Under the pieces are notes generated by a model. It searched no databases, was not told the DNA's origin, and saw only the letters and a program-made list of their open reading frames with translations. From the NCBI GenBank assembly GCA_950097015.1, contig CATNEN010000001.1, positions 22,692,001-22,756,000 of the forward strand: a stretch of DNA of 64,000 bases, read 5' to 3'. The DNA comes from Macrostomum hystrix. Taxonomy: Eukaryota > Animalia > Platyhelminthes. Shown piece by piece: positions 4,001-57,487 of this stretch (positions are counted from its first letter, which is position 1; each line of letters opens with the position of its first letter). The position numbers and the translations under genes are program-made.

Positions 4001-7000
4001 ATGCAGCTGCTCGTTGGCCGTGTTGATGCACAGCTGCTCAAAACTATTGAAGCTGAGATTCTCGAACCCAAAGATGTCGAGAATGCCGATGGAGGAGGTC
4101 GAGCTGGAGCTGCCAGCAGGCGCCAGAAGGTCGTTGGTTCTCTGGACAATCCAGGAGAACAGCTTATTGTACACAGCCTTGGCCATGGCGTCCCGACTAG
4201 CTCTGGCATCCGCCGGACTGTGAAACTTCTGAATGGACTCTCCGCGAGCCACCAGAGAAGACTTGGTCAGGGCGTCCGCCAGGTCAACTGGTGACACGCC
4301 CAGCAGGTTGGCCGCCGCGGCGGCAGCGTCCGGATTGGCCACCTTGGACGAGTCAGTCGCAATGTCAGCGTTGGATCGCTCGACGTGGTCGTTGAATCGA
4401 AGGTTGCCTAGAAACAGAATGCCGGACAAAAGGCGGAACACGGAGGACACCTCGGACTCGGCGAAGCCCAGGTCCAGGAAGCCGCGCCGCACAGCCGAGA
4501 GGTGCGCTCTAAAAGTACATTCAAGACACAGCTGATATTAATAACAATAATAACAAGAGGGCTGCGGGCAATGGCGCATTATTTGCAATTCTGCCCAATT
4601 CGCTGACTCCCGAGCACACACACACAGATACCGTACGCAGGCACACACCCACACAGGTGTGTACATCTGCCCTGACTTTTTCATCGTTGGGCAGTGTACA
4701 CTTGATGGTTGGCCCCAAAAGGGCATAAATTGCGCGACAAGCCCGCAATCCATCTCTACGCGGCTGCGTCCCAAATGAATGTGGCCTCGCCGCGGAATCG
4801 AGCTTAATTAACTCTCTAATGCTTTATTTCACTCAGTTGTGAAATAGGTATTAGAATCAGCAAAGGTTAGACATTTGGGTGGGTGTGGCACCTCCTTTGG
4901 AAGGCCAATTGAGAGTGTACGCCCCTAGCCGACAAGAGAACCGCATAGAATGTGCATGTGCAACAGTCCAGTTCTCTCACCTGTGCACCGCGGCGCGGCC
5001 AGAGTCAGGCGCAAACGTGGCGTGCAGATAGCGGAAGTCGGTCTGTTTAGCCAGCAGGGCCGCGTGCTCGTGCGACTCGCCGTGAGCTAGGTGATAGAAG
5101 ATGTGAAAGTTGCGCTCTCCCTTGCTCTGGTAGACCACCCGAGCCTTCTCTAGCAGGAAGTGGGCGAGGCGGGCGCCCCGGATGCAGCCTGTTGGGGACA
5201 CCAGCAGCTCCAGGTACTTCCCGAATCTGCTGCTGTTCTCATTCAGCACCGTGGCAGCGTTGCCGAATGCCTCCAGCAGGGGATTCACCTGCGTGCCAGA
5301 TTCAGTGAACTCTTGGCTATTTGCTGTTGCTACTCATAGTACTATTAAGTAGCTAAATTCTAAGGCAACGTATTAGAGTATACTGCACTGCAGTCTTGAA
5401 ATAAAAATACAGACTAGATTACAGACTAGACAGACTAGAACAGAATATACAGACATACTAGAACAGAATATACAGACTAGAACAGAATATACAGACTGGA
5501 ACAGAATATACAGACTAAAACAGAATATACAGACTGGAACAGAATATACAGACAGGAACAGAATATACAGACTGGAACAGAATATACAGACAGGAACAGA
5601 ATATACAGACAGGAACAGAATATACAGACTGGAACAGAATATACAGACTAGAACAGAATATACAGACAGGAACAGAATATACAGACTGGAACAGAATATA
5701 CAGACTGGAACAGAATATACAGACTGGAACAGAATATACAGACAGACTGGAGCAGTCAGAGCTCGCACCAGTGAGTATATTCCTACCTGCAGGAGTCTCT
5801 CCATGAGAGCGGGTTGCTCAGTAGTACTGAGTCGCACCAGCTGTCTGAGCAGTAGGTCGGCTGTGCAAGTCTTTCCAGCGCCCGACTCGCCAGAAATCAC
5901 CACGCACTGGCCCCGACTGCCAGCCGACTGGCGCAGGCGCTGAAGGCACTCGTCGGCCACGGCGAAAACATGCGGCGAGTTGTCGGCCTTGGCGGCATCA
6001 CGGTATCGCTCAGCAATGGCATCCGTGTAGATTGACAGCTGCTTGAAGGGGTTGATAGCCAGCAAGATGTCGCCCAGGTAGGTATAGACCATGTCTGAGG
6101 AATAGCGCTGGGCCAGCTGGGCCAGGATGCCGTCCTCTGTCAGGTGTGACAGCTGTGCCAGGTCGTCCCACCGAGTCTGGGCCAGCAGGCGGCGACTCTT
6201 GCGACCCCCGCCTGCTGTTGAGAGCGCGAAAGTTTAATCAAAGTCGAACAGCGAAGAAAACTAGCGATATACTATGTAACTTAACGAAAAAATAAATATT
6301 GACAATTGTTTGCACTTTCTTAGATTAGAAAATTAACGGATTAATGGTTTAAATTATTGGATACTAAACTAACGAATAGTAGTTAGTTTCTCGACGAAAA
6401 AGGAATTTGACCAATTTTTAATTCAACGAATTTGGAATTAAACAACTTTCTAGGAACTCAATAAATTCGTAACTCAACGAACTAGCAATTCAACGACTAA
6501 TGATTTCAACGAATTCGGAATTCAACGAATTAGGAATTTAACGAATTTGGAATTCAACTAATTTGTACTTCAAGGAACTTAAAATTTAACGATTAAGAAA
6601 TTTAACGAATCAGGAAACTAACGCATAAGAAGACGAATAAATAAGCTTTTGATAAAAAATAAGTTCATATTTTCTTTTCAAAATTCAATAATTTTGGGAA
6701 TAAAAAATGAGAATAAAAAGCATCTAATATGCAGAAGTTATTATTTTTTATCGTAGTAGCTAGTAAGTATAGTAGAATAGAAATGAAGCAAGCTCACTTC
6801 GGCTAGATAAAAGCCACTACATCATTCTCAGAATTCTCGGAACTAAGAATACTTGCTCACTCACCTCCGCGTTGAGCAGCTGGGGAGGCAGCGGAGGCGG
6901 CAGGATCCGCAGCTGTCATCATTCCGCCAGCCTCCCAGGCGGCTTTGTCGCTGATGAGTCGCCGAAGCATGGCCACGGGATCTTCGCCGCTAGTAGCAGC

Positions 7001-10000: not shown

Positions 10001-10177
10001 GTTCATTATTTTCACGGCACAGATTCGGCCGCTGGTTTTCATGCGGGCCCGGCGAACAACACCATAGGTGCCACGGCCAATGTAATCACCAATCTCAAAT
10101 ACTGACAGGGGGTCGGCCTTCTGTACTGTTAGGCCTGGGAGAAACAGCGGCTGCTGCTGCTGCTTCTGTCGGTCCAT
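1037..10177 (-). CDS. MYO3: Class III myosin (STE20-like kinase + myosin motor + IQ), 5' part; gene continues beyond the left window edge. Exons: 10177-9546, 7259-6865, 6214-5787, 5288-4981, 4508-3926, 3737-3126, 1423-1037
   Basis: Kinase motifs [35 protein letters not shown]. Motor motifs GESGAGKT (P-loop), [53 protein letters not shown], and an IQ-like CQAAVRRW. All junctions are GT-AG with matching phases. Confidence 0.93.
1619..2585. repeat. Intronic minisatellite, ~31-32 bp unit (ATGGG[G]TCATTATCCACTGCATACTGATCATC)
   Basis: About 30 direct tandem copies. Confidence 0.97.
2855..3030 (-). mobile_element. tRNA-derived SINE, family B (tRNA-like head plus body)
   Basis: The minus strand has TAGCCTGGTGGTTAAG (A box) and GGTTCGATTCC (B box), but the acceptor stem does not pair. 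The body (GTGGGTATTTGAATAAC...AAAGTAGC) recurs at ~805-855. Confidence 0.6.
4540..4804 (-). mobile_element. SINE family A, 5'-truncated copy in a myosin intron
   Basis: High similarity to 44412-44724, 57600-57853 and 35274-35585; (TAA/TTA)-rich tail. Confidence 0.8.
5435..5745. repeat. Intronic minisatellite, 19-20 bp unit (GAACAGAATATACAGACTG)
   Basis: Tandem copies immediately after the myosin exon donor at 5787. Confidence 0.95.
7330..9460. repeat. Intronic satellite, 13 bp unit CTAATCTCAGTG[T/C] with longer CTTATCTTCTCAGTGT variants
   Basis: A ~2.1 kb tandem array filling myosin intron 1. Confidence 0.97.
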
Positions 10178-13343: not shown

Positions 13344-15817
13344 ATGGCCCTGCTCAGTTTATACGGTGGTGTCCTCAGTGAGCTGCTCAAAACCTGCCGC
13401 ATTAATCGGAACGCTGATCTGCCGCTGCCTCGGATTCCCGGAGAGCCTCCACTGCTGAAGCTGCTGCAATCATCGCCATCAGAGGCAGATCGAATGTGCG
13501 AGCTTGTCCTGTCCATTTCGAACCCCAACGAAGCCAAAAGCTCTTCTCACAAGTCCGACTTCACATGGATGTCGCCCTATCACTCGGTAGTTTGCAGGAT
13601 TCTAGACAATGGGAGCCCTCTGAATTTGCCAAGCAACGATGAGCACCGTCAGTTTCTACTTTACGACTTATTTCGAGTGGCCTTCAACTGCCTCAAAGGC
13701 TGCCAGATCTCGGAGCTGAGGCTTCAGTGCGACCTTGCCTTGGCAGAGAGTTTGTTCGATTTCGAGAGACGGCCAAATCAAAAGCGAATCGCTGGCTTTC
13801 TCTCCTCTGCGTTTTTGCTGCTGCATCTCGTGCGGGTTGCGGACGCTAAACTCCTCACCGCCTCCGAGGAGGGCTCAAGCCTGTGCATTCGAGTCAACGA
13901 TGGACCCGAGTGTCCTCTAGGCTGGCTACCGTTTGACTTGAAGGGTGAGCAGCCCTTGCGGTTTGTGGAAGAACTACAAAAGCTGTTGATGGCCTCGGCG
14001 TCACGCAACTCAACGCCAATCCACATTTGTGTGCTCTTTGATGAACTTGGCATGAGCCACTGGTACCTGAGCGAAAGGGGCGCGGATCACCAGCACGACA
14101 GACTGCCGAACCACGACACAAGCCTGATTGAGTTTGAAGCAAGCAGCGGGTCCGTAACTGTCACAGTGACAGCCTTTGATGACTGTGAGGACAAGTACAG
14201 CAGTTTCAAAACACGGCTGACGGCTGCGCACCCCATCCCAGAGAAATATAAAGACGATGAACTTCTGCTGACATCAGTTCGACTTCTACTCAAGTTAATG
14301 GTGGACGACAACAATTTCTCGATTCACTTCTTTTGCCTGGCTGTTCCGTGCAGAACGACAGGAAGTTGGCTGGACATCGTGGAAAGACGGTACGCACTAA
14401 TCATGTTTCATCTACGAGCGTATATCTAAAAACTTGTTATTTTTAAAGCATGAACAAATAAACGACTAACCTCCTTACAGGGAGTTGCGAAGTTCTGCAT
14501 ATGAACGGGCGACACCAGGTTTAACACCCTTGGTGAGTGACGTCAGAATGGCAGCAAGTCCTCCGTTTCTTTCACGCTTCAAGCTGATTTCAATTTCTCA
14601 AATGCATTTTCAGGCGGCACCAGTCTCTCTGCACCAGGCGGCAGCGGACGGGAACGCAGCGTTGGTGGCTCGAATCGCGGGTTCAAGCCCATCATCAGTG
14701 GATGAGAGGCAAGTTGATCTCCCTCATCGCACTGCTCTGCTGTGTACTGCAGCTGCTTCGCTGGAAGACTTTGCTCAGGGCAGCAAGTCACATGCCGAGT
14801 GTGCTCACATTTTGATCGACAAAGGAGCTGATGTTCGAAGCGCTGATTCTCTCCGACACTCGCTTTTGCACTGCGCAGTTCCGTCTGGCAACACACCGCT
14901 GGTACAGCAGCTGCTGACTGAGACCGAAGCAGATCCCAACTGCAGAGACTGTGAGGACAGGACGCCGTTGCAGCTCGCTGTGGATGAGGAAAATGTAGCG
15001 ATCGCAGAGCTGCTCTTACGGAATGGAGCAGCGGTCTCCAGGAACAAAGATGGAAGTTGCATTGAACTCGCGAAGGCCATTGGTATTGAGAATATTGAGC
15101 TGGTGGAACTGCTTCTCAAGGCTGAATCCGAGTGTCTATCGGATCAACACTTCTCCAAGTACTATTGGACGGCGTGGAAACTAGACGCTACACGAATCTG
15201 CAGCGCTTTGATTCGGTGAGTGGATGGCGAAAGAGGCAGTTGGAATGTACCTTATAAGTACTTTTGAGACTTACTAGTTGCACACATTTACTCAAATGTG
15301 GTTTCAAATATTATTTCCAGATGGAAGTTCAACCAGACAGAAAGCGAAATCCTGGTAAGTTTATTGTGGCGTGTTCTATTATGCAGCTGAAAGAATATCT
15401 GTCGAAAATAACGAATTTCAGACCGCCGTCCGACTTGGCGAGCTGGCTTCTCAGGGCGATGTGAAGCAACTAGCCGGAGAGGTTAACAACCAAAACTGCG
15501 ACCTCAGAGACTGGGACTGCAGAACTCCGCTCATGTGGGCCGCCATCGGATGCTGCGATCCGACAGATGAGCATGCAGAGTGTGCTCAACTGCTGCTCAG
15601 ACTGGGGGCCAAGCATGGGCTCGTAGACCTGGATGGAAACACCTCCCTGCACCTTGCAGCCGCTTCTGGCAATAACCAGGTGATCAAGCATCTTCTGAAT
15701 CACGGAGCCAGTCTCCAAGCCACAAACCTGGAGGGTGAGCGGCCTGAGCAAGTCGCCGAGCACAATGGACAGCTGAGTGCTTTTGATATGGTTAACCACT
15801 CGACCTTGATCAAATGA
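13344..15817 (+). CDS. Ankyrin-repeat protein with a ~350 aa N-terminal domain of unknown function. Exons: 13344-14389, 14481-14532, 14614-15215, 15321-15354, 15422-15817
   Basis: Ankyrin motifs SLHQAAADGN, HSLLHCAV, RTPLQLAV, RTPLMWAA, GNTSLHLAAASG. GT-AG introns keep the frame. Confidence 0.8.
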
Positions 15818-33261: not shown

Positions 33262-34410
33262 TCAGACTTCCGCCCTGATCAGTACGAACAGCGGGTGCAG
33301 AAACAGCTTGAGATTCGAGTAACTCAACGAGTTCAGTCCATCTGTGCTCATGGTTTGCCGCACATTGTGGGTGTAGGGCCACGGCATGGTGTTGGTGACA
33401 ATGTCGTTGCCATGCCGAAGGTTGATGTACCTTGCATCAGGGCCAGCATTATACCTCAGTCCGTAGCCAGAGATGCTCAGCCTGGCCGCCAGCTCGTCAT
33501 CTTCCCGGCCCCATCCGTAATAGCGGTTCGAGTTGCCGTTAGCCTTCAGGAAAGCGTCCTTAGCGACGGCCGAAACTCCGCCGAAGAAGTTGTGATAGAG
33601 CCTGCCCTTGTAGTACTTGGCATTGTCCTGTGTGCGCATCTCAGAGATCAGCAGCTTCGGCGAGTTGCTGCAGTCATAAATGTTGGCCACATTCTCTGGC
33701 ACCTTGTCCGAGTCGTGAAACACGAAGCAGTCAAACTTGTAAAATTGTTGCGAAATTTGGAAGCCGATGTTCAGCAGCTTGGCCCGGTTGAACAGTCGCG
33801 AGTCCGCCTGCTCAACAATGAAGAGGCCGAACAGGATGTTCTGCCTGCTCAGCAGTCGATGAATATAGGGTACGAATATGTCCAGGTTCTCGCTGCGATT
33901 TCTGTACGGCACAATCACCGCCGTGTGCGACAGAGGCGGCCAGCAGCTCCTGGGCGCAAAGAAGCCGCCTTCAACGGTGCCAGGCGCAGCACCTTCGGCC
34001 GTCCAGTCTTTGAAGAGATAAGAAAGCATAGACTGCGACTGCGGCCGCTGACAAGCTTTGGAGCCATTGGAAGCAGCGGCGGCGAAGCTGACTGGTCGCG
34101 CTATGGGCTTCAAAGCGCTGAACAGCTTCGGGTAGCGCATGTTGGCGACCAGTCTAAGCTGCTGTTTTGAACTGTTCGATGCTTTCTTGGGCGCCATGAT
34201 AGCGGCGGAGTAGTTTGAAGCAGTCGGTTGACTCAAATTCCCTGCCTGCAGCTGCTCAGTTGGGGAGCTGGAAAATATCCGATGAAAGTAGGGCCGCCTT
34301 TCGCTAGTGACAATCAGCGCCCTGACTAGCAGCACAATGAGACAGGCGACAACAGCAGCTCCTAGCAGTTTCAGGCCTTTTCGAGTTTCAAGCATATTCT
34401 CTATGCTCAA
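33262..34410 (-). CDS. GT7 family beta-1,4-galactosyl/N-acetylgalactosaminyltransferase (B4GALT/bre-4-like), single coding exon
   Basis: N-terminal type II TM anchor; motifs AVIVPYRNR, FNRAKLLNIGF, CFVFHDSD (DxD), FFGGVSA, NG.SNRYYGWGREDD. Confidence 0.92.
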   Translation of the reverse strand: MSIENMLETRKGLKLLGAAVVACLIVLLVRALIVTSERRPYFHRIFSSSPTEQLQAGNLSQPTASNYSAAIMAPKKASNSSKQQLRLVANMRYPKLFSALKPIARPVSFAAAASNGSKACQRPQSQSMLSYLFKDWTAEGAAPGTVEGGFFAPRSCWPPLSHTAVIVPYRNRSENLDIFVPYIHRLLSRQNILFGLFIVEQADSRLFNRAKLLNIGFQISQQFYKFDCFVFHDSDKVPENVANIYDCSNSPKLLISEMRTQDNAKYYKGRLYHNFFGGVSAVAKDAFLKANGNSNRYYGWGREDDELAARLSISGYGLRYNAGPDARYINLRHGNDIVTNTMPWPYTHNVRQTMSTDGLNSLSYSNLKLFLHPLFVLIRAEV

Positions 34411-36871: not shown

Positions 36872-38859
36872 TACTACAGCAACATACCCCAATTTTTAGT
36901 TTATGGCCATAGACGAAGCTCTGACTGCGAGAAGAATACACTAAAGAGATAAGACGGAGGACGGAGGAGATGCGAACTATGCATACATACATACATAGAA
37001 AAAAGACAGGTTTTTTCCGATTTATAAGAACAGCAAATTGAAATTGATAATTTTAAGCCGATGGTCGTTGGAAAAATTTGGCATCATTTGGTGTTGGTCT
37101 CTCATCCCAGTTCGCAACCGTCTAGGAGGAGGTTCGTTACAAACCCGTCCCGCCTGCCCGTCGATGACGTCAGCTTCAGTATTATTAGGATTAACTAAAG
37201 TAAGAATCACTTATAAAATTTAAAACACCTTATTATCTCAGTAAATTAACATTATTGATAAATAATGTAAGCCCAGTATTAATTAGTGACGAGTTTAATG
37301 GAACAAATAGCTAGGTAGAGGAATAGTTACAAATTTGTTTTTTCAGCGGTGAAAAAGCAGATAATTAGTAAATACGGCTTGTGCAATATTCGTAATTTGC
37401 AAGAAAGCAAGAAAAAATTGCTTGCTGAAAAAATATTTAGAAGCTAAATTTGGGTTTTTCAAATTAAATTAGTTTAAATCAAGATAGTTTATCGAAACCA
37501 GAAATTATGGTTAAAATAACTTTGTCTCGTTGATTCCAAACTTTAAGCATCATTCTTACTTTTGCCCACAGAAATTAGATGCAAACAGTATGAATATGAA
37601 GCCGAAAATCAACTGTGAGTTTTGAAAATCAAATTACAACGCGTTTCGCACTCCTAGGTGCATCTTCAGGTTTATTTTGTCAACAGAATGAAATTAAACA
37701 GGTTTTGCGAACTGGTTTAAAGACTATGTTTCAATATTTTTTTATTTATCACTATTTGTAATTTATTGCAAACCATTCTTGGGCTTCTGCATATACGTTT
37801 ATTTCGCCCAGCACAATTTATATTGATTTAAATAGACTGGTCGTTAGCAGCGCTGAGAGTGACCTCGTCGTCTCATAGCCTATAATTTTCAAAGCTCAAT
37901 TGACGGCCTACTTCGTTTTTGAATAGTTGAAAGCTAGCTCACAAACAATAAGTATGTGGAGTTGGGTGTAGAATAACAAAAAAATCAACAAATCAATATT
38001 GGAAACACACGAGTTAGTCCGTAAGGCAGTGTGAAGTCCGGGGGGCAGAAAGAATGTACACACAGTACTCTCTCACATCAAAAGACACGTAGTAGATTAA
38101 CCGCGCCACTATGTTGGAGTTGAGTGTTCAGGCTGGGTGGCTGGGTTAGGTAGGCTTTCTGCCCCCCCGGACTTTGTACATGTCTGGTCGCGTGGCCGCC
38201 TCCCCCCCCCGTGGTGTCGGCTCAGCCCTGCAGCTATTTTACTGTTGCGCGCTGTGGCTTTTACTGGTTTAAACCTTTTGGGCCATTGTGCTGCTGTTTG
38301 TACTCGTACAAAAAAGAAGGAATTTCATTGAGATTGCCACGAGAGTCACCGTTCAGAGTAAGAAGAATTTTTTCTCCCTGACCGGGATACTACCATTTGT
38401 CGTTGGCCAGATTGTACACATTTTGACGCGTTAGACCGCTCTGCCACTGACCCCTAGCCAGTTTTCGCCTGCTACAGCCTCATTTGTTAGGCAAGCAGGA
38501 ATGAACGAGCAGGAAGCCCAGGCTGAGTCACGTTGATCGTTGCCTTCTCTAGCCGTCTCTTCCATTATACGCAGCTCCCGATTTAGACATAGCTCAGATA
38601 ATCAGAGCAGAAAAAGCAAGTACCCATCGTCGAGATTTTTTTAACAACAAAAAATTGCTACCTCTACACTCAAGTGACCTAGTGAGCATTCTTTATAGCT
38701 ATATTCTCTGTATAACAAACACGAAACTGCTCGCCGAAACCTATACTCACACAGATTGCTCAAAAGTGCGATAAGAAACAAGCATTGCACACAGATTGTT
38801 TCTGCACTGAAAGGCGACTGTGCCAACGAAAGGGATTCGCTGTGTTTATAGGCTAAGCC

Positions 38860-41800
38860 ATGAGCGAAGAACCGAGCGTGCCTGAGATCAGCCACCCATC
38901 AGGTGAGTGCATGGGATATGCATTACCAAGCATTGGAACCCAAAACACCTAGCTATCCGTTTGTTCTTCTCATTAGGTGGCTTTTACTAATTGCAGGTGA
39001 CCAAAGACTGGCACTGTTTCTTTCTGAACCAGGTGTGACCCAAACTATTGGGTCACGCAAACTATTGGATCAAGCAAACGATTACTTGAATTTCTTGAAA
39101 ACTTGCGCCTTCAGTGTAAAGCAGCTGCAGCTGCAGAAGGATTTGTGTCTGAAAGACTCAGTGAACGGTACAAAAGAGGAAGTGCAGCAGCTAATCATTG
39201 TTGTCATTGTGAGCGAGTCAGTGGAATACCGCATGGAAACATGTCTAGATTTCATGATCGATCAGAAATTGTGCCAAGACCGTTTTCTATTGTTCTGCCG
39301 AATTAGAAACCCGGTTCAGACATCACCAGACCATCACGACGATAGTTTAGCAAACAACTTTTCGGACACCGATTTCAAGTACGGCAGCGTAATGATCGCC
39401 TACAAGTTCGATACGGCAGATATCATAGGGAAACTTCTTTGCGAGCTTGTTGATGCAAAGAATTCGCATTGGAGCAGTGAATGCGTTTCAGATATTCTAT
39501 ATTCCGATGCAGTAACAATCGGAATGAAAGTTCACCGCAGAAAGCCGGGTATCCGTAAGTTCCTGCGTGATATTATAGAACGACCCACCTGTTCGCTGCA
39601 GGATGAGAGTGCCCAGGAAGTTTCAGTGAAGCCGTGCGTGGAATTGAGCGACGAATGGAAAGATAGAAATGCCAAGCTGATCTACCCGAATGCGCGAGCA
39701 CCCAAAAAACCTACTGTGCTCATCATTTCGAATGTTAACAAAGGCGATAAACTTTGCCAGTCTATCCAGACTGATTTCGAAAGGCTGTGTCGGCTATTCA
39801 AGAAACTCGACTACACAGTGGCAAATGCGCAGACAGACAGTGCGGAAGTTCTAAAGCATAGAGTCGAAGTATTCACCCAATATCCCGATCACGGGGACTC
39901 TTGTGTCCTTGTTGTGCTAGATCAGGGTAATCTCAAAGAATCGCAAGTCGTTGGTATGTTCGAGAACTTGGCCAATAGTGAGATACTACGGGGCAAGCCC
40001 AGGCTATTTATTCTAAATGAGTTTGAGAGCACACTGCAGAGTGACTGCGATTCTGACTCAGTGCCGACAGGCATTTCAACGCTTCTGGCTGACGCCATAG
40101 ACTCCATGCAGAAGTATTTTAGTGTCCAGGATTCCACCATCAAGGTTCACCCGCAGAGTGGCGTAGTGTTTGGTTTTGCTAAAACTGCCGACAGAGCCGC
40201 TGAGCAAGGCAGCCCTTTCATAAAAAAGGTCTGCGAGACCTTCGCTGATTATGGAGGCACAGAGGATGTGGCTTCTATGATCAATTTGATTAATGAGCAT
40301 CCATGGCCCGAAAATAATAGGCCAGTTTGGACAATTCAGACCGTGAAGCTGTTTTACATCACTGATACGACCGGAATAAGCAGTGAGTAGCTTATTTCGA
40401 ATTGACAAATCTCATGTATGGAACAATTTTGCAAGTGAATTCAACGTAACTAAGTAAAAAAATTGCTGGGCAATGATAGATAGACTGCTAGACAATACTT
40501 TTTTAAAGCCTCGTACTCGTACCTTTTTCGCCATGATTTGCAACATTCATGATATATTTAGTACTCCTAGGATGAACTCGTTAGCAAAAAACTACATTTT
40601 GAAATAATTGTACCTCCCATTGTTTATCACCAGCCTCACACCAGGTCGTGTCACCGCAGGAACGGCAACAAGAGAAAAAGAAAAATCACCTAGTTAAATC
40701 TAACGCGGGTAAGTGCAACTGGGGGAGCTTCTTGACGAACAAGTTAGGAAATGCAGTAGAGAACCGGCACCACAACAGCTTACTTTAATGAACATTTTTC
40801 AGACAAAACTGGGTTCGCCATGATTCTGAGCGAGGGCTCATTCGATGCAGCCAGGAACTATCAGACTTTTCTTGAGTACGCCAGCTTTCATGTGCATTTC
40901 GACTTCATATCTGGCGAGATGGCTGCCCTTCAAAAGGCTATCAAATCGGTTCAGGAATACTGTACCGCCACTCTGGCCATCTTTGTTGTATTGCGCAAAT
41001 ATCGCGCTGGTGATGACCTGAATAAGCTCATCAATATCATCAAAGAAACAAGAGAAATGCCGTCAGAAAAAGTAGAGAGTGTGTTGCTAATTTTTTGCCA
41101 GGTAGCTGAACCTACGCTCAACGGCCCGCAAGAGCCTCCGAATCTGGAAACTGAAAGTTTGCCGGAGAAGTTCACAGTTGTGAATGTCTATGGCACAGAA
41201 GAGAAAGTACTAAAGTTTCTCGAATCCATGCTTGACGGTCCAAGAGAGCCCGAAGGATTGAACAACAGTTTTGTTGTTGGCAGGGACTTCAGTGAAGCTA
41301 ATGTTAACGAAGACTGTTTCAACATGACAGTGAACATTCATGATGAAAGGCCAAAATGGAGAAAGAGAATTACCTGGCTAGGTAACTTAAGCGCCCAGGA
41401 CATTGGACCCTCACCTGATCCACAAGTTAGCGATGACACGAGGTACGTTTTGAGAGATGAATTCCGTTTAGAGAAGGCTAGAAAAGAATGGCACCCCTGC
41501 CAAACGATTCATAGTCCTTTGCCAACACATGTACGTCGCGCACTCATTGTGCACAACGTTGTCTTCAAGGTAGAGCCATTCTGCACTCGCTTCGGCAGCC
41601 AGCATGACTGCCAACGCCTAACGGACTGCCTAATGGGGCTCGGCTTCAGAGTCAGCATCAGGTCTAACCTCAGCAAAGCTGAGATCGAGAAGCAAGTGCA
41701 GCAATTTTCTGACAGCGATGATCACAGCAGCACTGCCATTATTGCTTTCCTTTCTCACGGTCGTTTAGGTGAAATCATCGGCTCCGATGGCCTGTCAGTG

Positions 41801-42280
41801 GATGAGAATGAAATCCTAGCAAAATTCTCTAAGGGTACAGGAACTCGCGAAAAGCAGCAGTTGGCCATTTTTCAAACCTGCCGAATTTCACGCAAAGAGG
41901 CTGCGCTTCCGTCAATTTATCCAGGCATGATCATCGCTCACTCTACATCACCTGATGACGTGAGCCTCAGAGTAGCCAACAAAGGCAGTCGGTTCATTCA
42001 GAGCCTATGTACCGTCCTGGACTTATTCGCCACCAAGGATGACATCGTGACTCTCATACCGATCGTGAATTTCGTTATGGTGAACTCAATCTATGACGGG
42101 TTCAGTCAGCTACCCTACTGGATTGTGCAAACTGGGAAGAGACTCGTACTTGGAGAACAAGATAGCCCAAGCCCAAACGCTGGGATCGTGGTTAAAGAGC
42201 CCGGAAGAACGGCAGAGCCAAGACCCCCCTCTGACTGGGCGCCTGTGATTGACATCATGTTTGGTCAGCGGCATCACTAG
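38860..42280 (+). CDS. Tandem caspase gene 1 (pseudo-caspase unit + active caspase unit), ~993 aa. Exons: 38860-38902, 38997-40382, 40634-40708, 40803-42280
   Basis: All three introns are GT-AG, phase 1 and frame-preserving. The first unit lacks catalytic His/Cys (VLDQG, KPRLFILNEF); the second has FLSHG and IFQTCR. Confidence 0.8.
38997..40382 (+). CDS. Exon encoding an inactive caspase-like (peptidase C14) unit
   Basis: PTVLIISN, DFERLCRLFKKLDYTV, HGDSCVLVVLDQG, LRGKPRLFILNE, GSPFIKKVC; both catalytic residues are replaced. Confidence 0.85.
40803..42280 (+). CDS. Exon encoding a catalytically intact caspase (peptidase C14) unit
   Basis: RALIVHN, RFGSQHD, FLSHG, QTCR, IIAHST, SLR...GSRFIQSLC. 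Confidence 0.9.
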
Positions 42281-43640
42281 GGCGATCTGAACGCCCATTG
42301 TGTTGAGACTTCGTTTCATAGTCTCAAGCTAGCGTCTTAAATATATAGGAAAGCCAGCGTGACAAAAGGCAAAATGACAAAAGTAACCGAAATTAGCAGA
42401 GATGTTGATTAAGAACTCTATCCTAATTATTTTTATGCTGCTGTTTTAGCAATGTTTGAGCATCGTGATTCGCTACTGCTACAATAACATTAAATATCTA
42501 CCAAGCTCTCGATTTTAGCATCACCGTACTCAAACTTCATTTCTTCAGTAATGAGCTCTCTCTGATTTCTTAGATTCATTTTCCTTTCGTTTCAATACCA
42601 AAATACTCACCATTTTAGTGGCTTTGAAAATGTTTATCTTGTTAGTTTGCCTGATTTACGAATTTTATAAGCGCTGTTGCTGATATTCCGTTATGTTTGA
42701 TGGCCCTGCAAATCGATTTTTCAACCGCATCAAATTTTCGTTGTGATGTGACCCTGTCACTTTTGTTGAATTTGCCTCCCAATGGGACTTAATGTATTCG
42801 TTATATTTTTGTAATTTGATGTTCTGTTTTTTAATGTAATGTGCGCATTGTATAATGCAAATTGGGTTTAATTTGTTAAACTGCAAATTTCCTAGAAAAC
42901 AACATTTTAATTGGCTATTTTGTAACACTTTCCCTCAACAGTACGGTATTTCAAATTAGCGGAAGGGAAATCAGTTTACTTTCGGACAATACACTTGCTT
43001 CACACGCTGCCGCTCCGAAAAACGTTACCGCTCGATGCTCGCAGTGTAATTCAGTTTTAAAAATTATTATTGTTTACAATTTAAAACAAATGTATTGCGA
43101 ATACTCGAATATTGCGAAACTATTGATAGCGCGAACTTTATCATGTAAAAGAACTATTAAAAACATAATGATACGTTAGAATCGAGCTCGCGTGAAAGCG
43201 GCAAACCTCAAAGTACTACAATTTAATCAGCTAATTAGCTTTTGGCCTTACTTACGTGCACTAACACTTACCAAAAGTATTCTAACACAATACAATAAAT
43301 ATTGAACTGTGTTAGAGGGCGATTGATTTAACTGCTGCACCAAAATACTTCTTCGTCCCATTTTTTTCGTCACAGTGAAGATCAGTTGCAACCTTCAATT
43401 TAAAACTTCCCAAATGTAAACGTCACTTTATCATTTTTCATAAAAGCATATTTTTTAAGCTTGACTGTAATAGCATTGAATGTTTTCCACGTAGAGAAGA
43501 AAGAGCAAAGAGTTGATAGTTGATCTTTTTATTAAATTGTTGCTAAGATAAAAAATTAATTTCAGCACTCAAACTTACCGAATCCGTGGCAAAATAACAG
43601 AAACCTACTCCCGTGCTTCAAAGCAATTTCAAGACAAGTT

Positions 43641-46600
43641 ATGACTGAATCTGCTGACGCTCAAGAGACTAGCCTGCCAGGTACTCACAGTGAAAAAGTA
43701 AAATCTCTGCATATTTTGCCGCTAAATGCTATTCATTTGAATCTTTGTTAAAATTTCAGTGCATCCGGAAGCACAGGAGCCTTCAAGTGAGTCATTCACT
43801 GTTTCCTTCTTTTTAGTTTGCTCGAGGGCTACTCACACTTGTGCTCCTACGCGTTGTTGCACTTGCAACAATTGTTTGTAGTTTTTATGCAAGACAATGG
43901 TAGATTATATAGTATGTTACGGAGTTAAATAATGGCCATAACACGAGTGCGCGAAGCGTGTGCATCGAAAGAAAGGGGCGAAGGCCGAAAATTGTCTATG
44001 GCAATCATCAACCAATGAAAAGGCACGGGGGGAACCGGATGCAAAAGAGTCAAAAACGAAAATAGCCAGAGCCAGAATAGCAATCCATTCTATTCATTCA
44101 TCCATGGAGCCAAGCCAGACAGGCAGATAAGGAGCGGGCTGGGGGTGGGCGCACAAACAGAAGCTTAATTTTGACCAGGCCTTACAATTGGCTCGCGCAA
44201 AAATGCTAACTATAACAAGAAATTATCGATCGCAGAGTTCATGGAGCCTCCGGTCGCATTGCACAAATTGAGCTGGTTTCGTACTCTAACGTTTGCTTAA
44301 AGTAGCCAATAAAACACTTTCAAAATTGGCGGAAATGAATATTAAATTGACAAAATTCCAACATGAGTTAAAACGGCCCTAGTTAGATCCACATTCAATG
44401 ACAACGTCACATCATTTGGTGACACTAGAACCGCAGCCAGCGAGGAGGCAATTCTGCCCAATTCGCTCACTACTGAGCACACACGCATACTGTATGTAAA
44501 CACTCACACAGGTGTGTACATCTGCCCTGACTTTCTCATCGTCAGGCAGTGTACACTTCACTGTGCCTTGGAGGTTGGCCCTCATGGGCATGAATTGCAC
44601 CTCAAGCCCCCCAAGCCTTCTGTCCGCGGCTGCGCCCCAAATAAATGTCACCTCGCTGCGGAATCGAGCTCAGGGACCTTGGTGCGAGAGGCAAACGCGT
44701 TAACCGCTCTGCCACTCACACCCCGATGGTGATGATACATTGGTGGATCGATGATCGTTGATGATCGAGGATCGATGATACCTCGATCCTGGCGCTTGCA
44801 AAGCGCCTGGCCTGGCGCTTTGTCAAGCACTGCCGATCAAGGGCCGCCGATCTATGATAGGAATTGCACATTGTCTTTTTGAACGGTTGGATCAGATGTG
44901 CAGATAGTGGCAAAGCCGCGGCTACAGAGTGGCGCATAATAAAAGTTCTGTGTACAGCTGTTCAGTCAGGCTGAAAACCACATCGACCCGAATTTCTACT
45001 GGCACTTACTGGCTAATACTGGTACAGATGTGACAGCTCTGAAGTGATTGGGAATAGACGTGCTGAATGTCTTATTTTGATAATTGTGGAAAATCCGATG
45101 CTTTGTAAATATGCCAGCTATTGTTAAACGTTACAGAGACTGTCCCTTTGATTTCGTCAGAAAAACATGCACCAGCTGTGGGCTCAGTCAGCAGCGAAGT
45201 AGGTACGAAAAATATCACACAATTCTTTAAGAACTTTTCAACTTTGCGTCAACGATAAATTTCAGTCTAACCTTACGTCTCAGAGCCGATTTCGTTCCAG
45301 TTATCAACCAAACAACGAATTCTGAAATCGTGGGTGCAGAAGTCGACAAGATAGAGTTTGGTAAGCTCCTATTCCGTTGGAAATAAGCTTGGAATTAATT
45401 ATTGCAGTTAAGATCTGTATCACTATCATTTAAAGGATATATCTAAAAGACATGTTCTACTACTTAAAGCTTTCTGATTCTCAGTTTTTTTTATAAATGT
45501 TTGTCAGTCGTCTAATAGAAGCATACTACTGATTGATTTCAGACCATCAGCGCATGTTCTTAGTCTTTGCACAAGCTCCCACTGCGGAGCTAACTGCGTA
45601 CGCCAAGTTCATCGAAAGCTGCTGCTTCCACAAGCAGCAACTGCCTCTGCCCAAGAAGTCATCGAACCTGTTCGAAAACCTCGACTTTAGTCGCCTGCCC
45701 GTGAAGCAGATCGTATGCGTTGTTGTGTGCTCCAGTTCGTCTGCCTGTTGCATGGAAGACTTTCTGAAATTTCTCAGTCGATTCAACAAGGATGTGGATC
45801 AGGTTCTGCTCTACTGCAAGGTGTCCAACTTAGAGGGGGAAGGTAAAGATAAGCCAATGCGCGAGCAATTTAGCGACACAAAATTTCCGTACAAGAATAC
45901 TATAATCGGCTATCATAGGAGTGTCAGCAGTGAAGGCGTAGAGGCATTTCTGCGAAGTCTTCTAATCCAGCAAAAGACAAACTGGAGGGACATGTGCATG
46001 TCTAAGGTTCTGTTAAAAGTGGAAAGCGTATGCAGTGGGAAAACGTACAGTCCTGGATGGAGCGGCAGTACTCGTAGTTTCACGCGCGAAATTCTCTGGC
46101 CTTGCGAATCGCCAGAATCAATTTGCATCGAAGGTGCGGACTCGTTTGAAAACCAAGTCGACTCAAATGTAGTTGCCCCGCTAATCGATTATCTGTACCC
46201 GAACAAACGTGACATGAAGCCGCAGGCCCTCATAGCTATGAATATTTGGAGCTCAGGTGGAAAGCCGCACGCATCAATGCTCGCAGACTGGAAGCTTCTG
46301 TTGTGGCTGTTTGACAAACTGCACTACCAAGTAAAGGACGTGCAAACTGACGCTGCCAAGTACAACCAGCTTAAGGAGTGTGTTAGAAAGTTTGCTGAGT
46401 CCAGTTATCACGGAGACTCGAGTGTGCTGGTTATACTTTCGGAGACCAAACTGACAGCCGATTGCGTCAGCAGCATCAACGATTACATGACACACGGGAG
46501 CCAAATTACTGGAAAACCCAGGCTGGTGATTCTGCAAGATTACGATGCAAAGCAGATTGAATCGGCGGATGCTGCACCGAGTTCGCTCGCCCACTTCCTG

Positions 46601-48870
46601 CCCGATGCTGTGCAATCGATGCGTGACAGGTGGCGCATCTCCCTGCCGGATGAGAGAACTCATCCACTTAGCGGCATGATCTGGTGTCAGTCGACCACCT
46701 CAGTTACCGACTGTGACCGAGGCAGTCCGCTCATGCAGACCATCTGCGATATATTCATCGCCCACTCAGCCTCAGAAGATTTAGTTTCAATGATACCGCT
46801 CATTAATTCAAAGTTAGACCAGATGAAAGAAATTTTACCACTGTGGTGCGTGCAGACCTCCAAACTGTTCTACATCACTAACACAGCAACAGCACCAAAA
46901 AGTAGGTCGGATTTGCTAACTGCACTTCTCGCGATGCTGATAATAAGAAACCTGGTTGGATCTCAGCGCTCTGACTTCATAAAATTTTATCCCTTCCAGA
47001 TGAAATCGTCAGCAATGAGCCAGAAGAACCTCCCGGAACTGACAATGATCCAGGAGGCATTCTCCACGAGTCACACGTAATCTCAGAGGAAGTAGACCGG
47101 TCGCAGCTACCAAAAGATAAGTTCGGTGAGTTTTTAGCGCCCTAGTTTTTATTTCTAGACGTAAATAGAAGGATTTACCAGCGTTCTGATGACTTCCAAA
47201 AACTTTATCCCTTCAAGACGAAATCGTCAGCAATGAGCCAGAAGAACCTCCCGGAACCGACAATAATTCAAGAGCCATCCTACAAGACTCAGAGGAAGTA
47301 GACCGGTCGCAGCTACCAAAGGATAAGTTCGGTGACTATTTTAGCACTCTAATTTTAATTTCTAGACGTGTGAGAAGCTGAAGCAATGCCTTACTGAACT
47401 TTAGACCGGCCTGGCCTAGCCCTAGTTCTCACGGATGGACTTTTCGACTCAGCTCGCGATTATACAATGTTTCTGGAATTCGCCGGCTTTCGTGTGATTG
47501 CAGAGCGCATTGACATCCCGCGACAGTCTGCTCAGGAAGTTATTGCTTTACATCTTCAGCTCGGTGCTCCGAGCTCGAGCTCCACAATTGTGCTGGTCAT
47601 CAGGAAGCTAGGAACTGGTGATCAAGCAGACAGTGTGAAAGACATCATTGAAGCGATGAGAGCTACTTCAAGCGAAAGTGGTAGCTCTCTGCTGATCTAC
47701 TATGGAATAGTTGACCAGACGCCATCCGACATATGCCTACCAGATAATTTGCCGCAGAGGTTCTCAGTTGTCTACCATTGCGACACCGGTGATAAAATCG
47801 ATGTCCGGTTGAGACAGTTGATGAAGGAGCCTCGAAAAAAGCTGAAAAACACTATTTTGGCTGCGTGCGACTTTAAGAAACTAGCAAGGAAGGATGGAGA
47901 GCCTAAATTTACGTACAAATCGACTGACAGTAAGCCGGACTGGAGTTACACAATCAAGTGGCCCAGAAGTCGAGATATCAGAGGCGAGGAAAATAAGAAA
48001 GATGACCTGTTCTGTACAGCAAGCATGAGAAAGATGTGGTTTCCTGGGCTTGATTCTCAAGCTACCGATGCTCAAATAACAAACAGAGCCTTAATAGTTC
48101 AGAATGTAGTCTCTCAAAGCAAGGGCAAACGGGAAACGCGACTCGGAACCCAGAACGACTGCCAGAGACTAACCGACAGCCTGACGCGACTTGGTTACAG
48201 CGTATCGATCCGATCCAACCTGGCAGCAAATGAGATTCTGCAGGAGGTAAAAAGCTTTTCGGCAGCCAATAATCACGGTCGCTCGTGCGTTGTGGCAATC
48301 ATGTCTCATGGGTACCTCGGCGAAATCATGGACTGCAACAATCAACGGGTGGACGAAGCCGAGATTCTATCGAAGGTTCACGGTGGTAGCGGAATACAAG
48401 GAAAACAGAAGCTAATCGTCTTTCAAGCTTGCAGGCCGCTCAGAAAAGGCCACTTGACAAGGCCATGGCATACCATTCACTCCGACATGATCATCGCTCA
48501 CTCAACCTCACCAAACCAGTACAGCTACCGAAACAAGGTGCAAGGCAGTAGGTTTGTTCAAAGCCTTTGCTCGGTTCTAGATGAGTTCGGATCTGAAACA
48601 GACATTGTTACACTCATCAGTTTCGTGAACTTCATGCTGTTGAACTGCTTTTACGATGCCAAGCGTTCCAATCAGACAGACACTCAGCTACCGTTCTGGC
48701 TTGTTCAGACTAGAAGTGCCTTTGTTCTCGGTAATGTGAGACGAAACCGAAATGCTGGCTGCGCCGTAAGTGTTCCGGATGAAGAGAAGCCAAAAAAGTC
48801 AAAGTTTTCAGTCTCGGCTAGACTGGCAAGATTTTTCGAAATCTTTCGCCAACAAAAAGACGAGCTGTGA
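43641..48870 (+). CDS. Tandem caspase gene 2 (pseudo-caspase unit + active caspase unit), ~1077 aa. Exons: 43641-43680, 43760-43786, 45161-45202, 45301-45360, 45543-46901, 47000-47125, 47218-47331, 47405-48870
   Basis: All introns are GT-AG and phase 1, and the joined frame is open. The first unit lacks His/Cys (VILSET, KPRLVILQDY); the second has IMSHG and FQACR. The small 5' exons are less certain. Confidence 0.75.
44412..44724 (-). mobile_element. SINE family A, inside a predicted intron of caspase gene 2
   Basis: Reverse complement of the 35274-35585 and 679-757 sequences, including the A/B boxes. Confidence 0.82.
45543..46901 (+). CDS. Exon encoding an inactive caspase-like unit (paralog of 38997-40382)
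   Basis: QALIAMN, DWKLLLWLFDKLHYQV, HGDSSVLVILSET, GKPRLVILQDY, HPLSG, GSPLMQTIC, WCVQTSKLFYIT. Confidence 0.85.
47405..48870 (+). CDS. Exon encoding a catalytically intact caspase unit (paralog of 40803-42280)
   Basis: RALIVQN, RLGTQND, IMSHG, QACR, DMIIAHST, SYR...GSRFVQSLC. Confidence 0.9.
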
Positions 48871-51544: not shown

Positions 51545-53326
51545 ATGAGCGAACAATGCGACACAACTCAGACGTCGAGCACGGCTAAAGCGCTTCCATG
51601 TGAAGGTGAGGCTCCTCTTGCAATTCCCGCCTTCAAAAATCCGTTCATACGCGATGTTTTTCGGCAGAACTTTCAGCACAAAACAATTCTTGTTTTATTC
51701 ATTGGAAACAGTTTTTAGTTCAAAAACAATATGGAATTTAATGTAAAAAAGTTCATTCCATTTTCAGAGCCTATTGATCCAAAATCATTTGATCTGAAAC
51801 CTGACGAGACTATGAGCATTGGCGAAGGACAATGCAGAGCCGTCATATTCAGCAAGCTGTGCGGCAACCAGCTCGACGGCTTCGCTGAAGTCAGCGACTA
51901 CGGCCAGTATTTGGACAGTTGTGGCTTCATTGTCAACTATGAGACGCCCGCTGACTTGAATCACGTCAGGAAGGTGATTACTGAGGCAGCCAAGGACGCT
52001 AAACAGCTTGTCGCTCTCTTTCTGATCGAGTCCGATCAGGAGACAGGTCTTGACAGCGTCGTCGAGTGGCTTCGAGAGGCGAACGATGCCGCTCAGAAAC
52101 TGCTAATTCATTGCAGAGTCTCAGCAACGGAAGCCGACGAGAAAGCGGACTGCGTCAAACTCATGCCGCCGACCGAGTGCCGAAAGATTCTCCGCAACAT
52201 TGTGCTCTTCAGCGTCGCAGTCAAGGCTAGAAAGGAGGCGCACAGGTTTCTGAGTGTTTTGAAGGATCTGCAGCAGAAGAGCTGGTCTAAAAATGGACTG
52301 GCTCATCTGATTCAATACGACATTGAGACTGATGTTTATGAGAAATTCAAGCTAAAGACACAGAACGGTCTCTCGAGTGAGTTCCTGCAGCCCCCGCAGC
52401 CCATCAAGATGCTGAAGGACAGGGAAGAATTCATGAGGATAATAGGCGACGGCACTCAACTGAGACAGCTAGACCCGAGCACTATCGAGAGCTTGAAGAA
52501 AGACTCGAACCCAATGGAGAGCATTGTTTACCCAATAGATTGCATGACAGCAAGGAAGAGAGCCCTCATCATCCACAATGTCGAATTCCTGCCACCTACC
52601 AGCAACAGGCCAGAAAGCTACGTGGACTATAAGAACCTGCACCATGTTCTGACACTCCTGCAGTTTGCTGTCACCGAGAAAGTCAACCGAACTGCTGCAC
52701 AGATTCGCGAAGACATCAGAGAATTCGCCAATGATGAGTGCCACGGAGATGTCTGCGTCCTCGCCGTCATGTCCCACGGCAGCCTCGGGGCTATCTGTGG
52801 CACCGATTATAGGTGCGAAAGCGGAACTGGCTTACTATTTGAGTCCGAGATCATCAGCCTTATGTGCGATGGAGCTGTAAAGTCAAAGCCTAGACTGCTT
52901 CTGATCCAAGCCTGTCGCAATGACTCAACCAGGTCTCAGGCCCTGACCGCGTCGGAAAAGACCTGCGCCACAATGACAGAGATGGCCATCCAGGTGGGCA
53001 TTCACTACGGTAATCCGGCTGAAAATGCCGAGCCCCCGCCAGATCAGAGCGGCCTGGTTGTCGCGCACTCCACTTCACCCGGATACTCTGCGTTCCGCAG
53101 TCGCTACGGCAGCCGATTTATTCTCGCCCTGTGCGCAGTCTTCTACGAGCTCGCTCACAAGGAGGACTTGCTGTCAATGATTACTAGAATTAACTTCATT
53201 ATGCTGAACGGCTTCAAACGACCAGAGCTGGATGGAAAAGTTCAGTCACTTCAACTGCCATGTTGGACAGTTCAAACGCACAAGAAGTTCTTCTTGGTTG
53301 ACACCAGTCCTCTGTTTAAAGATTAG
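51545..53326 (+). CDS. Caspase gene 3 (degenerate caspase-like N-domain + active caspase), ~539 aa. Exons: 51545-51605, 51768-53326
   Basis: RALIIHN, VMSHG, KPRLLLIQACR, VVAHSTSPGYSAFR, GSRFILALC. A phase-1 intron follows a short MSE... leader exon, as in gene 1. Confidence 0.88.
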
Positions 53327-55943: not shown

Positions 55944-57487
55944 TCAGCAAGAGTGGTTCCTTCTACGGCTGGCAATTGTGTTGAGCAGCCTGGCGGTGCT
56001 AACCAAGAAGACCTTCTTGTGGGTCTCCACGTCCAACTGCATATCTGCTGCGGCTGGCTTATTCCGTTCAGCTGAGGCTGCCTGAAGCCGCGAACCATGA
56101 TGAAATTGATCCTGTTAATCATCGAGACCACGTCCTCTTTGTGCGCGTACTTGTGGAAGGTGGTGCAGAGGGCTAAGATGAAGCGGCTGCCGTACGGGCT
56201 GCAGAAGCCTTGTTGGCAAGGGGCTGTGCAATGAGCCACAATCAGCCCACTTTGGGGTGCAGGACCTGGAATCACCTCCTGCAGAGGGTGACAACCATGG
56301 ACGGAACCTGTCCGTCCGCGAAGCGCGAGATGCTTCCGACTTTCTGGTCTTTGGTGTCACAGGCACATCTCGGCAAGCCTGAATGATTACCAGCCTTGGC
56401 TTAGCTCTCACAGTTCTCCCGTTTCTCATCAAGTTGATAAGTGCGAACTCGCTCACTAGTACATCTCTTCCGCCATCGGCATAGTCGATCCCGCATATTC
56501 CGTCCAGACGGCCGTGAGACATGATGACGAGAATGCAGGCTTCTCCGTGTGTAGTTTCGTTGGCGAATGCCGACACTATGTCATTAATTTCTTGAGCAGT
56601 CTTGTTGAACTTCTCTTCCACGGTAATGCTCATGAGCTGAAAAACGTGCTTTAAATTCTCATAGTCACTTATGCTAGACAATCTGTCACTAAGATTACGG
56701 AAGGTCATGTTGTGGATGATGAGCGCATGCTTCGTTGCTCGTGGTGGCTCACAGTAAACTAGATAGGCTGGAGGATCTTCGGAGGCCTTCAGAGTTCTGA
56801 CAGTTTCTGGATCCAGTGCCTTGAGATGGTCGCCCTCACCAAACTCTTTCGCCAGTTCTTTGTGCAGCAACTTGACTACCGGATGAGGCGCGTGATACTC
56901 ATCCAACAGTCCATTGACAGCTTTGATCTTGAACTTGTGGCTCTGCTCGTCAGTAATTTTGAATTGAATCAGGGGGCCAATTCCTTTAGAGAGCCAACAT
57001 ATTTCCTGCATTTTTCTCAACTTGCGTATGAACTTGCCAATTCCCTGGTCTCGATGGCGATGCTCAGAATGGCCGAGTTGCGCAGCTTCTCCTTACTTTG
57101 GACCGGGAGCTGCGGCTTCTTGCAGTCGGCAGATTCGAAATCAGCACAACTTGAAATTCGGCAGTAGATCAGCAACTTATGGACCGTTTCGTCCACCTTC
57201 GAAAGCACTGTTACAGTTTGGTCCAGATCGCTTGCTTTTTCCCTGTCCGTCAGGACGAGGACAACTAGCTTCTTGACGCCCTTGGCGGCGGTGGCAGTGA
57301 TTTTATCCTGGATGTCTTTGGCATTCCTTGATTGGTCATATTCGATGCTGAAGCAGCAGTTGATTAGGTAAGTCTCGTATTCCTCTAGCTCTTTCTCCTT
57401 GCCCATAGAGAAAATGATAGCTCTGTAGATATCGGCTTTGGCTCGTTGCGCTAACCATATTTCAGCGTTCCTAAAGTTTAATGGCAT
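55944..57487 (-). pseudogene. Caspase gene 4, inverted paralog of gene 3, with three frameshifts (pseudogene or assembly indels)
   Basis: HALIIHN, IMSHG, KPRLVIIQACR, GSRFILALC. Frame changes at ~57040, ~56300-56360 and ~56030; the corrected C-terminus WTVETHKKVFLV matches gene 3 WTVQTHKKFFLV. Confidence 0.8.

Follow-up and report, generated by a model that had tools for sequence, protein, structure and literature searches.

Two adjoining tandem paralogous genes, each combining an inactive ('dead') and an active caspase unit, lie in the genome of the flatworm Macrostomum hystrix. The window analysed here is a stretch of 64,000 nucleotides (assembly GCA_950097015.1, contig CATNEN010000001.1, positions 22,692,001 to 22,756,000 of the forward strand), and coordinates refer to it unless another contig is named. 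Segment 38860-48870 contains four long open reading frames (ORFs) on the plus strand (38903-40390, 40820-42280, 45533-47080 and 47467-48870). The four encoded units all exceed the cut-off of the Pfam caspase (C14) profile PF00656 (21.4 bits), with scores of 40.8, 94.7, 26.8 and 114.7 bits in ORF order, units 1 and 3 being weak matches and units 2 and 4 strong ones. The best relatives of the second ORF in the PDB are CED-3 and caspases 1, 3 and 7. In each gene the dead ORF is spliced in frame to the active ORF that follows it, through GT-AG introns and with partial support from RNA, giving gene 1 (38860-42280) and gene 2 (43641-48870).

Gene 1 is modelled as a protein of 993 residues (exon sum of 2982 nt including the stop). 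Exon 1 (38860-38902, 43 nt), placed by sequence and a frame check, supplies the ATG and 14 codons and ends in phase 1 at the donor CAG/GTGAGT (a slash marks the boundary); the intron that follows is 94 nt long. Exon 2 (38997-40382) is the dead unit, assigned from its Pfam match and alignments, and comprises a front caspase-like domain (~38997-39700) and a dead C14 domain (39701-40382), in which LDQG (39917-39928) stands at the position of the catalytic SHG motif, NEFE (40016-40027) at that of QxCR, and a conserved Asp lies within DSD/S (40049-40060). Its donor, A/GTGAGT, follows 40382. Exon 3 (40634-40708) is a linker mini-exon of 75 nt in phase 1-1, bounded by CACCAG/ and /GTAAGT, with an open frame. 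Exon 4 (40803-42280) begins behind the acceptor TTTTCAG/ and encodes the active unit, which has PDB caspase matches in addition to its Pfam score and consists of a front caspase-like domain and an active C14 domain with SHG at 41753-41761, QTCR at 41873-41884 and the stop codon at 42278-42280. RNA contigs extend the 3' untranslated region to ~43337.

The model of gene 2 has 1085 residues (exon sum of 3258 nt including the stop). Exon 1 (43566-43680) has an AG acceptor in front of it and the ATG at 43641, and is joined to exon 2 at 43680>43760 (43677>43757, cut +3) in two runs. Exons 2 (43760-43786, 27 nt), 3 (45137-45202, 66 nt) and 4 (45301-45360, 60 nt) are all in phase 1-1, with the joints 43786>45137 (GT-AG, two runs), 45200>45299 (cut +2, GT-AG) and 45359>45542 (cut +1, three runs). 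Exon 5 (45543-46901) is the dead unit, again a front caspase-like domain followed by a dead C14 domain, with LSET at 46436-46447, QDYD at 46535-46546 and the Asp in SAD/A at 46562-46573; its donor, A/GTAGGT, follows 46901. Two linker mini-exons with open frames come next, exon 6 (47000-47125, 126 nt) and exon 7 (47218-47331, 114 nt), which are tandem duplicates sharing 33 identical bases at the 3' end and the same flanking intron ends. They are separated by a 73 nt intron (47332-47404) from exon 8 (47405-48870), which starts behind the acceptor TTTAG/ and encodes the active unit, with a front caspase-like domain, an active C14 domain carrying SHG (48304-48312) and QACR (48424-48435), and the stop at 48868-48870.

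All junctions in both models are GT-AG and in phase 1, and every exon is open in the proposed frame. The exons were translated one by one, and the protein lengths are arithmetic on exon coordinates rather than lengths of joined proteins. As all exons of both genes are in phase 1-1, the frame survives the skipping or repeating of any of them. Between each acceptor and the ATG of its active ORF there are conserved codons, 5 before the ATG at 40820 and 20 before that at 47467, and both ATGs fall within the front domain. The similarity of the active units to each other and to proteins of Macrostomum lignano reaches back to the acceptors and not to these ATGs. Since their first ATGs sit inside a conserved domain, the active units can hardly be translated alone.

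Dead units and the Macrostomum family

In the alignment the dead units carry LDQG or LSET in place of SHG and NEFE or QDYD in place of QTCR or QACR, and both the catalytic His and the catalytic Cys are gone. The active units keep the dyad motifs (SHG and QTCR in gene 1, SHG and QACR in gene 2) and, judged by these motifs, are catalytically complete. An Asp ~12 residues past the lost Cys is kept in all of the six dead units compared (ASD/A, LAD/P, SAD/G, SAD/A, DSD/S and DSD/H), whereas the active units have a short loop with no conserved Asp. This position is the inter-subunit cut site of caspases and of cFLIP-L. Like D376 of cFLIP-L, the conserved Asp in the inter-subunit loop may be a point of cleavage. 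A Pfam scan of all units and their front regions found no DED, CARD or other further domain.

A search with dead unit 1 against 1.84 billion representative proteins gave 18 matches, the best seven all from M. lignano. One of these, P0004 (PAA75222.1, UniProt A0A267FQG9, 1017 residues), is the orthologue of gene 2, and its single coding sequence runs from a dead unit (LSEGW, QEYQ) through a linker to an active unit (SHG, QACR); P0003 (PAA73902.1, UniProt A0A267FLP5, 838 residues) likewise joins dead and active units in one coding sequence, without the first front domain, and is the orthologue of gene 1. Both are uncharacterised and carry the database label 'Caspase family p20 domain-containing protein'. 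The M. lignano GenBank annotation was built from a genome-guided transcriptome in which trans-splice and poly(A) sites set the ends of genes (PMC5730564), and the two proteins are therefore transcript-based models. BLASTP comparison of the gene 2 mini-exons with the M. lignano linkers returned a weak match at the right position (E 0.32); the same comparison for the gene 1 mini-exon gave no match, and any likeness of it to the P0003 linker is by eye only. Two further M. lignano proteins differ in layout: P0002 (691 residues) lacks the second front domain, its dead unit passing straight into an active caspase domain, and in P0006 a dyad-less unit of high divergence precedes the first part of another unit.

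In a maximum-likelihood tree of caspase domains the dead units (support 100/99), the active units (100/98) and the stand-alone units (100/99) each form a clade, and the dead, active and single units of Macrostomum together form one clade (99/99) with respect to eight nematode, insect, trematode and other caspases. Of the dead halves, that of gene 1 groups with P0003 (88/67) and that of gene 2 with P0004 (88/77); among the active halves, gene 1 and P0003 are the sole resolved pair (100/99). These pairings indicate that the fusion arose once, was duplicated as a whole and is older than the split between M. hystrix and M. lignano.

That the dead units are decaying, functionless leftovers of a tandem duplication, merely carried along in the transcript, appears extremely improbable. 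The loss of His, Cys and the S1 Arg and the long branches of the dead units in the tree would be expected of decay, but open frames of 452-461 codons have been kept in the dead units of both paralogues and of the M. lignano orthologues, the dead clade is old, and the motifs GKPRL, HP.SG and P.W..QT.KLFY are conserved among its members.

A third dead and active tandem of M. hystrix is found on contig C38 (12914000-12923999, minus strand 6095-8235) and has more introns than the two tandems of the window; an unrelated ORF of 166 residues lies at 2463-2963 of that locus. Stand-alone active members occur in the window (51731-53326) and at three other genome loci. The member in the window is on the plus strand and encodes 531 residues in a single exon, with a front caspase-like domain and an active C14 domain (Pfam 116.1 bits). 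A disrupted paralogue is present on the minus strand at 56115-57487, with its front and caspase domains in two overlapping ORFs; the C-terminal half of the caspase domain is out of frame and the Pfam match is limited to profile positions 2-143. The paralogue has probably become a pseudogene, unless an intron in it went unrecognised; the intact copy with which it was compared lies on contig C1 at 25.73 Mb.

These results bear out most of what a sequence-only reading of the locus had proposed. The order dead, active, dead, active agrees with the PF00656 matches and with the motifs, and the absence of both catalytic residues from the dead units is seen in the alignment. The donors (40382, 46901), mini-exons (40634-40708, 47000-47125, 47218-47331) and acceptors (40803, 47405) that it named are present, GT-AG, in phase 1 and in frame. 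Alignments that include M. lignano uphold its tracing of active-unit homology to the acceptors instead of the ORF ATGs, and its prediction of dead and active proteins of ~1000 residues, occurring twice, is matched by the two gene models, the third tandem and the M. lignano orthologues. Two features had escaped it, the predicted caspase fold in front of each caspase domain and the partial retention of the intron 47332-47404.

Elsewhere in the window, ORF translations inspected by eye suggest a myosin with an N-terminal kinase-like part (class III myosin-like; 968-10177, minus strand), an ankyrin-repeat-like gene (13344-15817, plus strand) and a galactosyltransferase-like ORF (33262-34410, minus strand).

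RNA contigs across the two genes

RNA contigs were taken from runs X2-X5 of one study, in which 66-71% of the words of the stretch are present, approximately the exon fraction. They were examined over 41800-47799, which covers the 3' end of gene 1, the spacer, and the 5' end and junctions of gene 2. Because the contigs contain GT-AG joints, they derive from RNA. Three gene 1 contigs (4571, 4513 and 3892 nt, depth 50-57) cover 41800 to ~43337, and in all three runs their upstream end lies exactly 3033 nt before 41800 and 2036 nt beyond the acceptor at 40803; with this reach, one contig covers both units of gene 1. At the 5' end, several combinations of AG acceptors, introns and spliced-leader lengths fit the fixed length of 3033 nt. 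In the part of active unit 1 at 41800-42129, short contigs of a run from another study with another organism label (X1) are 90-99% like this unit only and have an 8-base deletion at 42003; they may come from a related strain or species.

For gene 2, what is reported are the 15 joints listed (24 more exist). The contigs show the upstream exons 43566-43680, 43760-43786, 45137-45202, 45301-45360 and 45543-46901, linked by four GT-AG joints and recognised in part or not at all by the sequence-only reading; with 47125>47218, which is seen in three runs, five GT-AG joints are present in contigs of three runs. Contigs of X2 and X4 stop exactly at 46901, with 32 extra letters that map elsewhere. Unitigs break at 47331/47332 and at 47404, where downstream contigs begin; the break at 47331/47332 points to use of the donor. 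A unitig of 132 nt spans 47302-47433 without a gap in X2 and X3 at a depth of 5.3-6.0, compared with 6.8-10.3 downstream, and from this gapless span the intron 47332-47404 is retained in some of the RNA. The unitig starts 30 letters before the donor and ends 29-30 letters past the acceptor, a shape that is a bubble in a 31-mer graph, with the spliced form as the other arm. The intron-retaining form is not rare, contig depths being a rough measure. With the intron retained the frame ends at TGA (47379-47381), and such a transcript would, from its sequence, encode the dead unit alone.

Genes 1 and 2 are on separate contigs ~230 nt apart (43337-43566). A single gene in place of two was considered and rejected, as the gene 1 contigs end at ~43337 and those of gene 2 begin at 43565, right after an AG and preceded by 21 unmatched letters. 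This AG and the unmatched letters in front indicate that exon 1 of gene 2 is probably trans-spliced to a spliced leader. The spacing and pattern of the spacer fit an operon-like pair resolved by such trans-splicing.

The same process could in principle separate the units themselves. If polycistronic precursors were cut by spliced-leader trans-splicing at 40803 and 47405, the locus would yield four separate mRNAs and the dead units would be free proteins acting in trans, like cFLIP. Macrostomum does have spliced-leader trans-splicing and precursor transcripts that code for several proteins, gene 2 itself is seemingly trans-spliced at 43566, and the contigs break at 47404 beside an intron that part of the RNA retains. 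We nevertheless regard this arrangement as very unlikely. In the active units the first ATG comes only after 5 and 20 conserved codons of the front domain; a second break falls exactly at the donor 47331/47332, which trans-splicing at the acceptor alone would leave unexplained; the mini-exons of gene 2 are spliced to each other; the gene 1 contigs run unbroken through 40803 in three runs; and the M. lignano models, although cut at trans-splice sites, are still single coding sequences.

The 1350 nt intron of gene 2 contains a dispersed repeat of ~300 nt (44000-44110 and 44408-44715), at which RNA-contig depth rises into the thousands with many variant joints. A first look at the genome gave at least 1963 candidates, and the 40 copies that were scored show 88-90% identity. 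In the high-depth region (44000-44720) neither an Rfam nor a tRNA scan gave a match. A short stretch like this repeat is seemingly also present near 38430-38460, upstream of gene 1.

Front domains, predicted pairing and proposed mechanism

A region of ~190-240 residues precedes each caspase domain, including those of the stand-alone members, and has no Pfam match; outside Macrostomum a sequence search found no relatives, its only matches being M. lignano proteins. We modelled residues 31-270 of the stand-alone paralogue (51731-53326) with AlphaFold2 from a 12-row alignment, obtaining a predicted local distance difference test (pLDDT) score of 70.9 (80-93 in the core) and a predicted template modelling (pTM) score of 0.68. 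The elements of the model follow in the order beta1-alpha1-beta2-alpha2-beta3-alpha3-beta4 ... beta5-alpha4-alpha5-beta6. A Foldseek search of the PDB with this model gave 236 matches at E <= 0.001, and among the matches listed all are caspases or the protease-like domain of cFLIP-L. VIA-align places CED-3 (Z 14.7, root-mean-square deviation 3.6, 164 residues aligned) and cFLIP-L (3H13; Z 14.5, 2.9, 162 aligned) first, followed by caspases 4, 9, 3 and 8, Dronc, MALT1, metacaspases and legumain; the top 22 all belong to clan CD, and unrelated alpha/beta folds appear from ~Z 9 down.

Comparison by hhalign of the front-domain profile with the family's own C14 profile aligned beta1-beta4 (probability 62%, E 7.7e-5), which is thin evidence, and put a conserved Cys-Arg of the front domain on QACR and a residue other than His on the SHG position. 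A search of PDB sequences with the front-domain profile found no caspase. Language-model features of the front domain resemble Peptidase_C14 clusters at 0.90, which we treat as a lead only. On the strength of the model, the front domain is likely to be a caspase fold (Caspase-hemoglobinase fold, clan CD). If so, the fused proteins would contain four caspase-fold domains and one active site, and the stand-alone members would probably already be a pseudo-caspase joined to a caspase.

In a complex prediction of the gene 1 active C14 domain with the gene 1 dead C14 domain, the pair reached an ipSAE of 0.66, compared with 0.30 for the best of three controls; the runs share at least 52% of contacts and the partner has a pLDDT of at least 75. 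The mark set for this score is passed by 51 of 78 solved complexes and by 2 of 108 mismatched pairs. On both domains the predicted contacts involve helix alpha5 and strand beta6, with DIVTLIPIVNFVMV and SQLPYWIVQTGKR facing DVASMINLINEH and RPVWTIQTVKLF. The interface so predicted is the canonical one of caspase dimers, as in cFLIP-L:procaspase-8 and in the modelled coral protein Caspase-X. Across the dead, active and single units 27 alignment columns are invariant and seven of them fall within the alpha5/beta6 stretch, which suggests that the dead units kept the interface while the active site was lost.

We consider it probable that the locus consists of two tandem genes, each encoding a single chain in which the dead C14 domain is a built-in partner that controls one active site. 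The chain would start with a short tail, followed by a front caspase fold, the dead C14 domain, a disordered linker of 25-80 residues contributed by one or two phase 1 mini-exons, a second front caspase fold and the complete C14 domain. The dead C14 domain would pair with the active one through alpha5/beta6, forming a single-chain heterodimer with one active site, and would set whether and when that site forms; it could serve as a brake or as an activator. Cleavage of the loop of the dead domain and cleavage of the disordered linker are possible switches, and retention of the intron 47332-47404 could supply a free dead unit as a possible trans-acting form.

A fusion that is real may also be organized differently, with pairing inside each unit between the front domain and its own C14 domain, and with the dead unit as a module of its own, for instance one that senses, scaffolds or offers a decoy substrate. 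The caspase fold predicted for the front domain has the complete beta1-beta6 topology, this domain precedes every C14 domain of the family, including those of the stand-alone active members, and all dead units keep an Asp in the inter-subunit loop, as such an organization would allow. We regard it as unlikely, given that the dead:active pair scored above its controls and that conservation within the dead units is highest at the alpha5/beta6 residues.

Several points weigh against the single chain with a built-in partner. The splices 40382>40634 and 40708>40803 lie outside the RNA examined, and for gene 1 the evidence of a fusion is contig continuity, the sequence and the orthologue; a contig that runs across two units is no proof of a single mature mRNA. 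The junctions that the sequence-only reading had named in gene 2 are partly seen, in that 47125>47218 occurs in three runs and breaks are found at 46901, 47331 and 47404, but 46901>47000 and 47331>47405 are not among the joints listed. The unitig with the retained intron reaches a depth more than half that of the adjacent ones, and much of the gene 2 RNA in these runs may not encode the fusion. All of the RNA, moreover, comes from the one study. On the structural side, the complex score may be recall of solved caspase dimers, and the prediction is silent on which caspase-fold domain pairs with which, such that the front domains could be the real partners. Docking of the dead and active C14 domains through alpha5/beta6 was predicted, but a full-length AlphaFold2 model of P0004 from M. 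lignano, which represented the joined proteins, has a pTM of 0.34 and no confident domain packing.

A broader scheme, which we put forward tentatively and hold to be doubtful, would make the whole Macrostomum family covalent pseudo-oligomer caspases. A cryptic dyad-less caspase fold would precede every active C14 domain, the fused chain would mimic a two-fold dimer or a dimer of dimers, and recruitment-driven dimerisation would be replaced by intramolecular pairing tuned by loop cleavage and intron retention.

Comparison with known systems and significance

The closest known counterpart is coral Caspase-X (Acropora millepora AmCaspase Xa-Xd), which has an inactive and an active caspase domain in one chain (Moya et al. 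2016; PMC4715348). It was cloned as cDNA and killed HeLa cells more strongly without the inactive domain, and its authors modelled it on the cFLIP/procaspase-8 heterodimer and thought the type restricted to corals (PMC4715348). Like the flatworm proteins, Caspase-X has an N-terminal domain that lacks His and Cys followed by an active domain, a beta6/alpha5 model of the pair, and a history of expansion in its own lineage. It differs in having 721 residues and two domains, whereas the flatworm proteins have ~1,000 residues and an extra predicted caspase fold before each C14 domain; cell-killing assays exist for Caspase-X, whereas the flatworm proteins are known from sequence, RNA contigs and models alone. 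The flatworm fusion is probably independent of Caspase-X, as judged from a tree built without coral sequences; a separate origin is suggested by the fact that the Macrostomum units form one clade apart from ordinary animal caspases.

The complex of cFLIP-L with procaspase-8 (PDB entries 3H11 and 3H13) likewise pairs a dyad-less pseudo-caspase with an active caspase through the canonical dimer interface. There, cFLIP is a separate gene product recruited by tandem DEDs, whereas the flatworm partners are covalently tied and have no DED, CARD or other Pfam domain; with no DED, the flatworm proteins do not count as members of the cFLIP family. The sequence-only reading had proposed a tethered pseudo-enzyme of the cFLIP/caspase-8 kind in an architecture undescribed in metazoans. 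The first part gains from the controlled complex prediction, by which a cFLIP/caspase-8-like pairing of the dead and active C14 domains is plausible; the claim about the architecture fails, since Caspase-X has it (PMC4715348) and two-CASc mussel caspases have been listed (PMC10967218). The latter are four Mytilus coruscus caspases in which, as in the flatworm, the caspase domain is doubled in one predicted protein; they are genome predictions, and the listing itself does not state whether either domain is active or dead (PMC10967218). A survey of lophotrochozoan caspases records, as the only unusual form in M. lignano, a kinase-prodomain caspase, and no other unusual flatworm prodomain (PMC11463336).

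The combination of a dead and an active caspase is known from corals, and what is new is its presence in a separate flatworm lineage. The flatworm version is conserved across Macrostomum species and occupies three loci in the M. hystrix genome; the extra, probable caspase-fold domain predicted before each caspase domain is likely to be new as well.

Dimerisation turns caspases on, and their best-known regulators are pseudo-caspases such as cFLIP. To our knowledge, coral Caspase-X has so far been the sole case of such a regulator covalently tied to its enzyme. An additional case in flatworms, seemingly of separate origin, would mean that evolution arrives at the single-chain solution repeatedly. 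Since M. lignano is transgenic and amenable to RNA interference, the role of a tethered pseudo-caspase is testable there in a live animal that regenerates. Should the caspase fold of the front domains be confirmed, many of the long prodomains of invertebrate caspases may merit a second look.

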